Source: Pelomyxa schiedti (lineage: Eukaryota > Protista > Evosea). From it: a stretch of 64,000 nt of DNA. Under the pieces are notes generated by a model. The model worked only from the letters and a program-made list of their open reading frames with translations. It had not been told where the DNA came from and ran no database searches. Positions within the stretch are counted from its first letter, which is position 1. The number at the start of each line of letters is the position of its first letter. The stretch spans positions 1 to 64,000 of the forward strand of contig JAHLWZ010000579.1 in the NCBI GenBank assembly GCA_020536535.1, read 5' to 3'. Made by a program: the position numbers and the translations under genes. Of the stretch, positions 39,201 through 45,521 are shown in pieces.

Positions 39201-39923
39201 CGTGGACCTGGTCGACCGGGAGCTCGGCGTCGATTACGTGGATGCGGCCGCCAAAGTGGGGCAGGACCAGGCCCAGCTGGGCGTAGTAGGCGCGCAGCCG
39301 CGCCCGCACGACGCGCTCGTCGAGGTCGTGGGCGCGGCGGACGAGGCGGGACGCGGGGACGTCGGGCGGCGGCGGGGACAGGGCGTCGTGGTACAGGGCG
39401 CCGGTGTCGCGGTCGACGAGGCGGCCCAGCACGCGGCGGACGCAGACGTCGTCCGAGGCCTGCAGGACCAGGACGCGCTCGACGGCGACGGCGGCGGCGA
39501 GGGCGCGGGCCTGGTTGGCGGTGCGCGGGAAGCCGTCCAGGAGCACCGCGGGCGCCGAGGCGACGTCGGAGTAGAGGTCGCGGCGGGACAGGCGGTCGTG
39601 GATGAGCGCGATGACGAGGTCGTCGGGGACGAAGCCGCCGCGCGCGATGTAGGGCTCGACGCGGCGCCCAAGGGGGGTGCCGCGCAGCACGGCTTCGCGG
39701 AATATGTCGCCGGTGGATACATGCAACATTCTGCGGGGAGAGGTGAGGGAAAGAAAGTAAGCTCGTGGGTTGGGTACAGAACCCCCCCCTTTGAAGGCAC
39801 AAAGGGGGAAAAAAAACGCAGGGGAATGCGACGGCCATACCCAAGTTTGGCAGCGAGTAACTTAGACTGGGTTCCTTTGCCTGAGCCGGGCGGACCAGCT
39901 ACCAGGATTACCCGCGACGACAT
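36269..39923 (-). CDS. Fusion protein: adenylate kinase - C3HC4 RING - VWA - Vwaint - Hint/Vint domain (4 exons)
   Basis: ADK (GPPGSGKGTQ|GMLHVSTGDIFR, VPDD, LLDGFPRT, LID GRLVDRDTG); RING CAICLD...PCGHQCGCSGC...CPICRG; VWA with intact MIDAS (DISGS, GSTN, LLTDG); Hint starts G/CFAPG (Cys codon 36788-36790), with ITGKHP, VYNLVLD and ECATWGHG. Confidence 0.9.
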
Positions 39924-40201
39924 AACCGACACTCTTTTGGTTTTTCTTGAGTTTTTCCTTGAACTGATGAAACCACTGTGCATCTGTCGCCCAAACCAAA
40001 CTCGACGTGCCCCATGTTAATAACTATGAATTGCACGTGGAATTTGGACACCTCTGGTAGTGGAAAGTCTGACAACTACGGAAAAAACTCCCCAAGTTGG
40101 AGAGTACCCACGAACTTTTTTTAGAAACTTGTTGTTACGCAGCCAAATACCAAACCAACAAAACACACAAAAAAAACACAAAAGCAACACACACCGCGGG
40201 G
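39924..40201. promoter_or_regulatory. Putative bidirectional promoter between two head-to-head E3-ligase genes
   Basis: Only 278 bp separate the two ATGs; the interval contains a CACGTG (E/G-box) core and A-rich tracts. Function is inferred. Confidence 0.4.
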
Positions 40202-43200
40202 ATGCAGAATTGGCAAAACAGAGCCAACACCCCCGGCAACCTACAGAGTAGCCAGACCGCACCGCCGCAGTCCTACTACGGCTACCAGTCACCGCAGCAG
40301 ACGCCCATGGGAGGCAGCGGGGGAGGCTGGCCAGGTGGTGGTGGTGGCGGTGGCGGTGGCGGCGGCGGCGGCGGCGGGGGTCCTCCTGCCATGTACCCGC
40401 CGTACAACCCCCTCACAAACAGCGGTGGCTTCAACAACAACCCCAACAACATGCAACCGCAGCAGCAGCAGCAGCCGTACCAGAGCAACTACGTGGCGCA
40501 CCCCGCCGCTGCGGCCACCGGCTCCCCCAGAACTCCGCACCAGCCCCCGGGGACCCCCGCCGCGTTCAAGCCGCCAACGTACTCCCCCCAGCCCCCGTCC
40601 GCGTATACGCAGCAGCAGCCACAGGCACATACTAACTATCAGGCCAACCCACCATACACGTACACCTACAACCAAAACCCTCCGCCGCCGCAGCAGCAGC
40701 CGCAATACGGCGGCCCCACGGGCTACACGGGCTACAACCACACCAACACCTACAATCAGCCCCCGCAGACGCAACAACAGCAGCAACAGCAGCAGCAGCA
40801 GCAGGCGTGGACCCCGCCGCCAGTGAGCATGCCGACACCCTTCACGCCGCCGCAGGCACGCCAGCCGGCGGTCGTCGGCCCTGTCATGCCAAACACCTCG
40901 CCCACTCCTGCGCGCTCCCCGGGAGGTACTGGCGCGGCCAACGCCAGCCCGCAGGTGCTGCGCCAGTCTGGGCATGGTGCCTCCTACACTGCTATGCCGC
41001 CGCCCACGCCGATGCCCATTCCTACGCCGATAAGGGTCCCTGGGCCGCCGGCGGCGGTGGCGCAACAACAGAACCAGCAGCACCGGTCGCCGCAGCCGGC
41101 GCACCCAAGTCAGCCTACGACGGCGCCTAACCAAAGAACTAACAACCCCAATACTCAATGGCAAAATCCAGGCCAAGTGCAGTCCTCGTTCATCCAGAAT
41201 CAGTATCACGAGAACGGCATGCAGAACATGTCTCAGCAAGGTCCTGTGGCACAACAGCCACTCACTTGCGGTATAGGAGGCATGAATCTAGGGAGTCCCA
41301 GTTCTGGTATCTATAGTGGCGCATATAGTGTTCTTGGCGCTCTGAACAATCAAAGTCCTGGCGCCACACCCACACCTCTCAGGTCTTCTGGTATTGAAGA
41401 GGCGCCAAGTCCATGTTCCTCCGCGAATGCAAAACCTAGAACACTCCAACCCCATTCCACAGCATCGAACGACTCCCAAGTGCCCACCAACAATCTTTGT
41501 TGTACCCCAAACAAGCCGATGCCTTCTCCACAAGAGAACAGGTTTACTGCTAACAATCCCGGCCCGACAACACTGCAACCATCAACTCCCATACCGTCAT
41601 ATCCTTCCCAGCCAATCCGCACACCTTCACCACCAACACAGGTAACCGATTCATCAGCCAGGCAACTTTGTGCAAATCGCGTGGAGCCAGTACAACCAAT
41701 ACAACCCGCACTCCCTGAACCTTCTCAATCAAGCCGGGTACTTACAACTCAGCCGGTCGCCACACCTGTCTCTACTTCCTCACAGCCAGTCACCTCTGTG
41801 CCCCCACCCTCTACACATCCAGCACCCACATCCCCTCAGCCGACCCCCATTGCATCTCGACCAGCAGAGCCGCTCCCAGTGGCGCCGCCAGCAGCTTCAC
41901 GATCAGCGCCTTCCCCACCACCGGTAACAAACGGACCACCCGCCCTACGTATTGTCACCCAGCCAGTGGCAAATCCCATGGAAGGTTCAACAATCCGCGC
42001 CAGCAACAATGTGAGGGCAGCAATTGAGGGCGAGGCTGATATTGAGAGGTATAATGCTGCAAGTAAAGAAGGTTTCTTCACGATATGCTGCTGGTGTGAG
42101 GACCGACCAGTTGTGTCTTGTGCTCGAGTGAGACCTCGTTGCACTGGTTGTGGATGTGATGCTGTTACACTTAAGAGCCAACCTAAAAATTGGCAAGAGA
42201 TGTGCTTTGACGGTGTTGAAGCTGAATGTTATGCGTGTGCTGCCCCAAATGCCCGGGCTGTACATTTCGCGCGGTGTGGGAATCAAATTAGCCCTGCTGT
42301 CAAAGAATCTCACCCAGGGCGATACAAGAGAGAGCAAACTATATGCAATAACTCTGATGTAGTATTCTCCCAGCTTCTCTTTGGCAACGCTGGAAAAAAA
42401 GGGCAATGTGCTATTTGCCTGTCACCAGAACCAGTAAGCACCATTCAATTTCAGCTTGCACCTGAAAAGACTTTTCTTGTAGGTTCTCGTCTTTTTCCCG
42501 AAGCCATGTCTACATTTTATTTGTCCCTCTTGTTTTGCGTCGGCGTGGACTGAGAGAATTCAACAAAGAAGATTGCCATGGAATGTAGAAAAGCAGTGTG
42601 TTGGAATAACCTGCCCTGGTTAGTATTAGATATTTTCAACAAATTAAGATAACACACAAATAATAAAAGCTGGCTGCCAAGTTTTTGTCAATGATATCCA
42701 CATTCTTAAACTTCTGGGAGATAAGTACTATAATATCTTCAAAGATATGAGCGCCTCCAAAACTGCTTTAGCTGTAAGCCTTTCCTCCATTTCACAACCT
42801 CTGACCCACAAGTAGAATATGGGCCTCTGTGGTGTATACTGTGCTGTTCCAAAATGCTCTGAAGTACCCTTTATCCCCATTGCTTTAGATCGCAATTTTG
42901 CTCAATGTCCTACTTGCAAGGTACGCAATAACCAATTCCACTGATTTCCAGTACGCTCACTGTGGTAATAAAAGAAATACACATGCGTAGTTTGCCAGGA
43001 ACAAGCTGGTAATTGTATTTGCACTGGTGTTGATCCAAGTGCACTTGCAAAGTATAGAGTTACTGTTGAAGGTCTTTTGCATGTGACTGAATACACACAT
43101 AACTTAATTGTTTTTAGGTCACTTCTGTCAAACTGTTACCATACCAGATCGGTTCCGATCTCACCCACTCAGTATCAGAGGCCCCCGAAACATGACTATA

Positions 43201-43998
43201 AACGTATTTTTTTGTCCCCCGATTTCTCTTGCCACATGTACTTTTTCCGTAGATACATGTCGATGACACTCCCAGAATACTGAAATGCTTGATCGAGAAA
43301 CAGATCAACCTTCCATGTTTCAAGCAAAAACTGATTTTTGCTGGGACACAAATTTCCGATGACGAACCTCTTTCGAATTATGGCTTGGCTGCCAATACAT
43401 GTGTACATTTGATTCCTCTTGCCGATTCGGCTCCCTCAGCCGCCCGGAGCGACCCGTAATCTTTCTTCCATTAACAAGGCGAGTGTTCTCACTAAATAAT
43501 ACACTTTTCAGCGCTTCAACAAGACCAGTGGCTACACAGACAACGACCCCCACGACTCCATCTACAAGAGCGTCACCAGCGACTGTTCCGACGAATGCAC
43601 AAACTACACCAGTACAAGTGTCAAGTGCTGCAGTACCAGATCCGCCTTTCATAGGAAAGAGGTGTCCTTCCTGTAACACCCCAATTGTGCACTTCAAGTA
43701 TGAGGAGCCCTCCCTTTGCTTTTTTTTCTAACATACAAAAGATACCATGGATGTCATCACATCAGACCTGGTGGTGGTTGCCCCTCCTGTGGCTTCCATT
43801 TCTGGTAAATACAAAACAACAAACCAACAAACAAACTAATGCAACCGCAGCTTCAATTGCCTAGGCCGGCACCCGTGCCCCACTTGCCCTCTGTGGTGCA
43901 ACAAATCATGCACTTGCCCACCTTGTGATGAATGCAAGCCCCATAAACCTTGCAAATTCTGTGATGGGTGCAACGTATGTGAACCCACAGACTACTAA
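40202..43998 (+). CDS. Parkin-like RBR E3 ligase with permuted architecture: Q/P/G-rich N-terminus - RING0 - RING1 - IBR - Ubl - RING2 - Cys-rich tail
   Basis: RING0 FFTICCWC...RVRPRCTGC...QPKNW...ECYAC...HFARCG (~42068-42283); RING1 CAICLSPEP|VLVFFPKPCLHFICPSCF...TCP|AGC...IHILKLLG; IBR CAVPKC...CPTCK|KYTCVVC; Ubl KQKLIFAGTQI...NTCVHLI; RING2 KRCPSC...HGCHHI...CPSCGFHFC|FNC. All introns are GT-AG. Confidence 0.9.
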
Positions 43999-44103
43999 AC
44001 CACCTCATCAGCATAATGTTTATCTGGCAGTAATTTAAATGTTTTTTCCTCTTTTTTTGCAACGAAAATCTTGGCTTACGTGGCAATTTATCTCGTATCT
44101 ACT

Positions 44104-45521
44104 ATGGTTGGCGTTCGTACGATCACGGCCCTCGTCGCCCTCGTGCCCCTCGGTCTGTGCGTGTACTCTGTGCTCACGATCTACCCCGTCGTGCGCTTGG
44201 CCTCGCTGCTCCTCGAGGACCCTCCCAGCACCGCCGCGTTCTGGGCCGCGTGCGCGTGCCCCTCCCTCGCCGTCCTGGCCTCGCGGCTGGCGGCGGATTT
44301 CGTGTGGCCCCGCAGCCTCGCGGCGCGGGGGGCCGGGCGGGCGGGCATGCTCGTGTTCGGCTGCGTGTTCCTGGCCCTGTGGCCGTGCCTGGCCTACGAC
44401 GCTGCGGCGGGGTCGCTGCGCCTGCTGCTGCCCGGCGCGGGGGCGTGGCTGGGCGCCCGCGAGCGCGCGGCGGGGGTCGCCATCGCAGCGTGCGCGGGGG
44501 CGGCGGCCTGCGCGGGGGTGGTGAAGGCGCAGCTTGTGTGCGTGAGGAGGTTCGTCGTGCCTTCGAAGAAGGTGTCGAGGCCGTTCACAATTGCCCATGT
44601 TTCAGGTGTGGGTGGGAATTCTAGGATATCTGTAATTATGTAATTTCGTATTCCTGTATTGTATCGTGTATGTAGGCATGCATGTCCGCCACTCTGGATT
44701 TGAAGTTACTCTTTCAAATTGAACACTCGTTTATGTATCTACCTCAGCAATTCGTTTTTTCCCCTTTCTCTTTATTTGTTGGTGGTAGCTTTACCTTCTT
44801 CTTTTGTCACACTCTTGATAGACATTCATGTGGGTTCCCGTTCTTATTCCTGGCTATCTCGAGTTGTGGACAAAGTTAGTTCCCTTGCGCCAGATTACGT
44901 TGTAATCACCGGAGACCTCACGGATACAAGAGGATTGGAACCAAGAGACTTACTTCCTTTGGAAAGGCTCACCTCTCGAATCTTTGTGACACTTGGGAAT
45001 CACGATTTTTGGAGCGGGGAAGAACGCGTAGTGAACGCTCTTTCCAAGTTGAGAGCCAAAGTGACTGTTTTGCGAAATTCTCTATCCTGGAAGGGTCCTG
45101 TGCAGTTCATGGGCATTGATGATGTTGAATACACCGCGGACTTTAATAGAATTTTTGATGCACTAGCGGGATTGCGGCAATTTGACTCCTCCAAATTCAC
45201 AGTAGTACTGCACCACAGGCCTCACAATGGCGGAATACAGCATGTTTCTGATTCTCATTCTGTTGATATGTTTCTTGCTGGTCACACCCACGGCGGTATT
45301 TCTCCTCTTTTTTGGAATCAACAAAAAGCTTATTTTTTCGTGTAGGTCAGCTCTATCCCCTCAAGTTTTTCATCAAACTTGCGTTCTGGCATATCAGCGG
45401 TCTTCTTCACACAGATTCCTTTTTTGCTTACACATCCCCTGGGACTGGGACTTGGGGTCCACCCCTCAGATTATGTGATCAAAACACAATAGCCCTATTT
45501 ACAGTGACCCCCGTTGAATAG
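44104..45521 (+). CDS. Membrane-anchored calcineurin-like metallophosphoesterase (YkuE/TMPPE family); start uncertain
   Basis: N-terminal TM helices followed by DIHVG, ITGDLTD, LGNHD, LHHRP, AGHTHGG|Q and the family tail SPGTGTWGPPLR. Confidence 0.9.

Follow-up and report, generated by a model that had tools for sequence, protein, structure and literature searches.

RBR ubiquitin ligases are typically autoinhibited, and in Parkin, the ligase linked to Parkinson's disease, the repressor element (REP), a helix that carries Trp403, blocks the E2 site on RING1. To our knowledge, the RING0 domain is otherwise unique to Parkin, and the only known role of residues K161/R163/K211 and H302/R305 of animal Parkin is to bind phosphate, namely that of pSer65. 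The titles of the Protein Data Bank (PDB) entries 7us1, 8wzo and 8ikm indicate that the RING0 site of Parkin takes its phosphorylated ubiquitin-like domain (pUbl), phospho-ubiquitin (pUb) and phospho-NEDD8 (pNEDD8). Parkin has been treated as an animal-specific RBR subfamily (Marin 2010, PMC2904391). Entamoeba histolytica lacks both PINK1 and Parkin (PMC9796589), the oxymonad Monocercomonoides lacks PINK1 and PARK2 (PMC6759080), and a deep survey of mitophagy-specific machinery across eukaryotes had not been done (PMC6759080). Here we describe a gene within a 64-kb stretch of contig JAHLWZ010000579.1 of the amoeba Pelomyxa schiedti (assembly GCA_020536535.1), which we refer to as the window and whose coordinates are used throughout. 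Judged from its sequence and from RNA contigs, the gene is expressed and belongs, as a divergent member whose domains stand in a non-canonical order, to the Parkin lineage of RBR ubiquitin ligases. It places that lineage, with a permuted ubiquitin-like domain (Ubl), outside animals.

In the unspliced six-frame translation, RBR-type Cys/His motifs and a ubiquitin-like segment were spread across three frames. As RNA evidence, we used three single-cell runs (X1-X3, labelled 'protist metagenome'), whose contigs over positions 39900-45300 showed nine GT..AG introns of 42-56 nt each as splice joints. The spliced exons formed an uninterrupted reading frame that translates to 1119 residues. From the N terminus to the C terminus, the predicted protein consists of a P/Q-rich region, RING0, RING1, IBR, an internal Ubl, a T/P-rich linker, RING2 and a Cys-rich tail, which are arranged as follows (profiles A1 and A2 and the homologue P0001 are described below).

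40202-43998, + strand: whole coding sequence of the Parkin-like RBR ligase, 10 exons, 1119 residues, stop codon TAA at 43996-43998
40202-42433, 42483-42618, 42670-42773, 42816-42920 and 42975-43071, + strand: exons 1-5, from RNA joints
43118-43203, 43253-43455, 43512-43697, 43742-43804 and 43851-43998, + strand: exons 6-10, from RNA joints
40202-42070, + strand: low-complexity region rich in P, Q, T and G, ~620 residues, without an N-terminal Ubl, from translation, with RNA from 41270 on
42071-42283, + strand: RING0-like domain, residues 624-694, from profile A1 and alignment to Parkin
42407-42773, + strand: RING1 of Parkin type, residues 736 to ~824, exons 1-3, from profile A2
42816-43022, + strand: IBR, residues ~825-875, exons 4-5, from alignment to the Parkin IBR and Cys pattern
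43165-43420, + strand: internal Ubl, residues 908-976, exons 6-7, Pfam ubiquitin E 4.6e-9
43421-43662, + strand: T/P/S-rich linker between Ubl and RING2, ~60 residues with several TP/SP sites, from the spliced translation
43663-43860, + strand: RING2, residues 1039-1074, exons 8-10, mapped through alignment to the homologue P0001
43870-43995, + strand: Cys-rich C-terminal tail, ~42 residues, at the position of Parkin's short C-terminus, from translation and common to P0001

The protein encoded by this gene was itself absent from the protein collections, whether by word-indexed or exhaustive phmmer search, and three word-indexed homologue searches returned nothing besides the query. An exhaustive phmmer search against 1.84 billion representative proteins revealed two true homologues of 35-38% identity, both hypothetical proteins of the archamoebid P. 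schiedti: P0001 (Pelo_2487, KAH3765652; 740 residues) and P0003 (Pelo_3794, KAH3764327; 460 residues). The remaining phmmer matches, P0002 and P0004-P0006, reflected summed weak similarity to long repeat proteins and were dismissed. Like the window protein, both homologues contain RING0, RING1, IBR and an internal Ubl, with exon boundaries in common, and P0001 also contains RING2 and the Cys-rich tail.

We used these homologues to place the gene within the RBR family. On its own, the RING0 piece of the window protein found no Parkin match in the PDB by phmmer, and it scored 12 bits on the Pfam domain zf-RING_12 (PF17976), which is below the cutoff of 25. Two profiles were therefore built from the window protein, P0001 and P0003, one from the three RING0 regions (A1) and the other from the three RING1-IBR regions (A2), and each was searched against the PDB. 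Profile A1 matched 23 distinct sequences at E<0.01, every one of which is Parkin (23/23, E 8e-9 to 6e-3). Profile A2 matched 24 distinct sequences, again all Parkin (E 2e-11 to 1e-9), and no other RBR at E<0.1. Consistent with these matches, P0003 scored 30.4 bits on zf-RING_12 against the cutoff of 25, both homologues scored 34-36 bits on zf-RING_14 (PF17978) against a cutoff of 26.6, and the best PDB match for RING2 of P0001 was the RING2 of Parkin (9c5e, E 1.5e-4; 2lwr, 5caw), ahead of ARIH1/2. When the low-confidence model of P0003 was submitted to Foldseek, 32 Parkin chains (E 3.5e-10 to 1.2e-6) preceded the next RBR, ARIH2 (1.6e-2), a ranking that serves as a family pointer only, as the TM-scores were only 0.32-0.35. 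A protein-language-model look-alike search also ranked the Parkin cluster first, with a weak score.

The window protein shares with animal Parkin (human, rat, Bactrocera dorsalis, Pediculus humanus) the order RING0, RING1, IBR, RING2. Within RING0, equivalents of the zinc ligands C150/C154/C166/C169/C212 are present and W183 is conserved as W664, and within RING2 the catalytic residues C431 and H433 correspond to Cys1054 and His1056. The internal Ubl scored 36.4 bits on Pfam ubiquitin against a cutoff of 25.4, and, as in Parkin, it keeps I44, G47 and H68 and carries a hydroxyl group on the side chain at position 65. In contrast to animal Parkin, however, the Ubl is located between IBR and RING2 rather than at the N terminus, K151 is replaced by Cys and E444 by His (His1069), no REP tryptophan is evident, and the spacing of zinc ligands is changed in RING0, RING1 and RING2. 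The protein also adds the ~620-residue N-terminal low-complexity region and the Cys-rich C-terminal tail, its identity to Parkin is only ~20%, and the amoeba that hosts it is anaerobic, with reduced mitochondria. The other described ligases to which it can be compared, HOIL-1/RBCK1, ARIH1/2 and HOIP, which carry regulatory ubiquitin-fold or ubiquitin-binding modules, have an RBR core and an autoinhibition that is relieved by an allosteric ubiquitin-fold ligand, as we propose below for the window protein, but they are without RING0 and their scores were much poorer (none at E<0.1 in the A2 search; Foldseek E at least 1.6e-2).

We next asked which residues of the two phosphate pockets of Parkin are retained. 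Parkin numbering was anchored on the well-known zinc ligands of the human protein (C150, C154, C166, C169, C196, C201, C212 and C238, among others), which is consistent with the alignments. An original prediction, made from the DNA alone, had mapped K161/R163/K211 of RING0 to R/R/R in the motifs RVRPRC and HFARCG, and the profile hidden Markov model alignment of A1 to solved Parkin chains reproduced that assignment: human Parkin VQPGKLRVQC aligned with VSCARVRPRC, which places K161 at R642, R163 at R644 and C166 at C647, and Parkin AEFFFKCG aligned with AVHFARCG, which places K211 at R691. The predicted H/K at H302/R305 in DIHILKLLG likewise emerged from the A2 alignment, in which the window segment CPAGCQVFVNDIHILKLLGDKYY sets H302 at H800, R305 at K803, G308 at G806 and Y312 at Y810. 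By phmmer, the Ubl exon and ubiquitin 20-70 could be aligned with no gap, which set I44, G47, Ser65 and H68 at I948, G951, T969 and H972 and agrees with the earlier reading of this domain, including the Thr at position 65 (codon ACA, 43397-43399). All of the motifs and coordinates were present in the DNA (RVRPRC, 42125-42142; Arg of HFARCG, 42272-42274; His and Lys of DIHILKLLG, 42699-42701 and 42708-42710), and the RNA splice joints put them in one reading frame. The broader claim that both pockets are conserved holds for RING0, where the triad K161/R163/K211 is complete, and in part for RING1, where the pUb pocket K151/H302/R305 retains two of three residues; the loss of K151, which corresponds to Cys630, had been missed. 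The two pockets together thus retain five of six residues. The three amoeba proteins compare as follows.

Window protein: K161/R163/K211 as R/R/R; H302/R305 as H/K; Ubl with T65 and H68, position 44 Ile; RING2 present
P0001: K161/R163/K211 as H/R/T; H302/R305 as H/R; Ubl with T65 and H68, position 44 Val; RING2 present
P0003: K161/R163/K211 as K/R/R; H302/R305 as S/K; Ubl with Ala65 and Leu68, position 44 Tyr; no RING2 exon within ~900 bp downstream

Human Parkin has 19 basic residues other than zinc ligands in the aligned RING0 and RING1, seven of which the window protein keeps as K, R or H. Retention was 5/6 for pocket residues compared to 2/13 for the others (hypergeometric p = 0.0095, a value that is post hoc and alignment-dependent), which argues that the retention of basic residues in this sequence is concentrated on the pockets. 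Furthermore, the position of R163 is invariant and the positions of K161 and R305 are basic in all three amoeba proteins. Because the pocket residues of animal Parkin have no known role other than phosphate binding and its RING0 site accepts pUbl, pUb and pNEDD8, the simplest interpretation is continued binding of a ubiquitin-fold ligand in phosphorylated form.

These considerations suggest a model in which the window ligase would be autoinhibited like other RBRs and would become active once a phosphorylated ubiquitin-fold ligand occupies the pockets. The most economical ligand in cis would be the protein's own Ubl, phosphorylated at Thr969, which is tethered to RING2 by what appears to be a flexible linker of ~60 residues. 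By docking on RING0, the phospho-Thr969 Ubl would draw RING2 away from that domain and free Cys1054, in much the same way as pUbl acts in Parkin. Either pocket could also serve for phospho-ubiquitin in trans. The Ubl stands in the place of Parkin's repressor element, where it may take part in autoinhibition. We tentatively propose that a phosphorylated ubiquitin-fold ligand activates the window ligase through the conserved pockets, a possibility that we take seriously without regarding it as probable.

Several observations weigh against this proposal. The K151 equivalent is lost not only in the window protein, as Cys630, but also in P0001 and P0003, which have Thr at that position, and each homologue is short of one or two pocket residues. 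Across the three sequences, changes in the RING0 pocket did not go along with changes at the Ubl acceptor. In addition, Ser/Thr at position 65, His68 and Ile44 are ordinary features of ubiquitin, and therefore Thr969 by itself is a poor indicator of a kinase. Both AlphaFold models had low confidence (pLDDT 45 for the RING0 piece of the window protein and 52 for RING0-RING1-IBR of P0003), too low to judge the geometry of the pockets or to align residues by structure, and the residue map comes from the HMMER alignments. No Trp that could correspond to REP Trp403 occurs in the 30 residues after the IBR, where the HMMER alignments end. Parkin's C-terminal anchor on RING0 is replaced by the Cys-rich tail, which, together with the absence of an evident REP tryptophan, suggests that autoinhibition may work differently. 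Finally, we know of no ubiquitin kinase shown in this lineage, and no kinase motif was found in the 64-kb window, with no search of the genome for PINK1 having been made. The earlier suggestion of a phospho-switch therefore stands as to an expressed Parkin-family RBR with five of six pocket residues and a Ser/Thr at Ubl position 65, and it is weakened by the loss of K151 and by the inconsistency of the homologues.

The main alternative is a Parkin-family ligase that has no phospho-switch and on which no ubiquitin kinase acts. Its basic residues would be inherited leftovers or would make contacts that involve no phosphate, for instance salt bridges with acidic residues in RING2, the linker or the internal Ubl, and its Ubl would serve as a constitutive autoinhibitory or adaptor module that replaces Parkin's REP. 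The loss of K151, the one or two pocket residues lost by each of P0001 and P0003, and the intact RING0 triad of P0003, which has lost both the acceptor and RING2, are consistent with this alternative, as are the Ser/Thr found at position 65 in ubiquitin itself and the insertion of the Ubl at the place of Parkin's repressor element. PINK1 and Parkin are also reported to be absent from Entamoeba, a related genus (PMC9796589). In contrast, the concentration of retained basic residues on the pockets (p about 0.01) and the conservation of R163 and of basic residues at K161 and R305 in all three amoeba proteins weigh against it. We also know of no non-phospho role for these residues in animal Parkin. 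On balance, we regard a ligase without the switch as plausible to the same degree as one with it, though short of probable.

We also considered whether the pockets bind a different phosphorylated ligand, for which no PINK1-type kinase would be needed. Candidates are the T/P-rich linker, through proline-directed phosphorylation, phospho-NEDD8 or another Ubl. The ~60-residue linker adjoins RING2 and has several TP/SP sites, the linker of P0001 is shorter and also P/T-rich, and the RING0 site of Parkin is promiscuous, taking pUbl, pUb and pNEDD8 according to the PDB titles. However, the sequence of the linker is not conserved and the argument is purely inferential. We regard this explanation as improbable. 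It is very improbable that the gene belongs to another RBR family and resembles Parkin at the pocket residues through an alignment artefact, because, despite the missing PDB match and 12-bit zf-RING_12 score of the isolated RING0 piece and the Foldseek TM-scores of 0.32-0.35, RING0, RING1-IBR and RING2 each rank Parkin first, both profile searches match Parkin only, and the homologues exceed the Pfam cutoffs for both Parkin-specific domains.

The boldest reading is that a working phospho-ubiquitin or phospho-Ubl switch exists outside animals, in an amoeba that is anaerobic and has only reduced organelles as mitochondria, and that it is built on a domain-permuted Parkin whose Ubl acts in cis beside RING2. 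We consider this full proposition rather unlikely. Were it true, the phosphate pockets of Parkin and a ubiquitin kinase would predate animals, and the original switch would have reported something other than a drop in the membrane potential of respiration. If archamoebae have a ligase of the Parkin lineage that keeps residues known only for binding pSer65, the origin of the switch would shift to before animals, and one would have to ask what is sensed by such a system when a cell has no respiring mitochondria. A natural 'permuted' Parkin would also provide a test of how the position of the Ubl relates to the release of RING2.

The segment that follows the IBR bears on the fate of the repressor element. 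The residues A-K-Y-R-V-T-V-E lie directly after the IBR (43044-43070), and their counterpart in P0001 is A-R-Y-K-K-E-V. The window segment resembles the start of the Parkin REP (A-Y-R-V-D-E), a likeness that may reflect what is left of the repressor element or may be due to chance. At the other end of the protein, the tail has the pattern C-x-LWC-x3-C-x-CP-x-C in both the window protein and P0001 and is probably an additional zinc module.

The two homologues differ from the window protein in several respects. P0001 has a ~215-residue Cys-rich insert between RING0 and RING1, has His in place of K161 and Thr in place of K211, and has a P/T-rich linker between Ubl and RING2 that is shorter than that of the window protein. 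Its insert (residues ~205-415) contains repeated CxxC...CxxC modules that are absent from the window protein and P0003. P0003 is without RING2, has a degenerate Ubl (Ala65, Leu68, Tyr44) and has Ser in place of H302. Its gene ends right after the degenerate Ubl, a SIR2 gene is next downstream, and no RING2-like Cys pattern was found in the ~900 bases downstream (contig JAHLWZ010000291.1, 3001-5600). P0003 may be a Parkin-like paralogue that has no RING2 and is catalytically dead, or else a copy in decay. An intron occurs at an equal position in the window gene (42433/42483) and the P0003 gene (3720/3857), between the first RING1 CxxC and the 'VLVFF/MLFF' strand. The exon after this intron encodes 45 residues in both genes, and a 35-residue IBR exon is common to the window gene and the P0001 gene. 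The GC content is similar, at 0.457 for the window and 0.448 and 0.486 for the loci of the two homologues.

No Parkin-type N-terminal Ubl is present in the window protein, and the only Ubl, as in P0001 and P0003, lies between IBR and RING2; the N-terminal half of this domain is encoded by a separate 86-nt exon (43118-43203). We infer that translation starts at the ATG at 40202, as the RNA contigs begin only at 41270. The opposite-strand neighbour gene ends near 39923, and therefore there is no space for a Ubl exon upstream. The low-complexity region (40202-42070) shows strong AT and GC skew and includes a Gly run (40328-40390) and a Gln run (40768-40813), both within the part without an RNA contig (40202-41270).

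The RNA contigs, which derive from a 2023 sample, differ from the coding sequence of the window at 43560, 43641, 43772 and 43959. All four differences are synonymous and at third positions, and a DNA run of 2021 matches the window sequence at each of these sites. The four variants, a small sample, fit strain polymorphism under purifying selection and not editing. Just 3' of the stop codon, one contig of DNA run X4 is without 83 bases at 44026-44110, with GC..TT ends, which probably reflects polymorphism for an indel, or a variant of the assembly, in this 3' region. The downstream gene (44071-45345) appears to code for a protein whose GC-rich N-terminal region is hydrophobic and membrane-like and precedes a motif of calcineurin-like metallophosphoesterases (GNHDF, GHTH), and RNA contigs span 44745-45297 of this gene.

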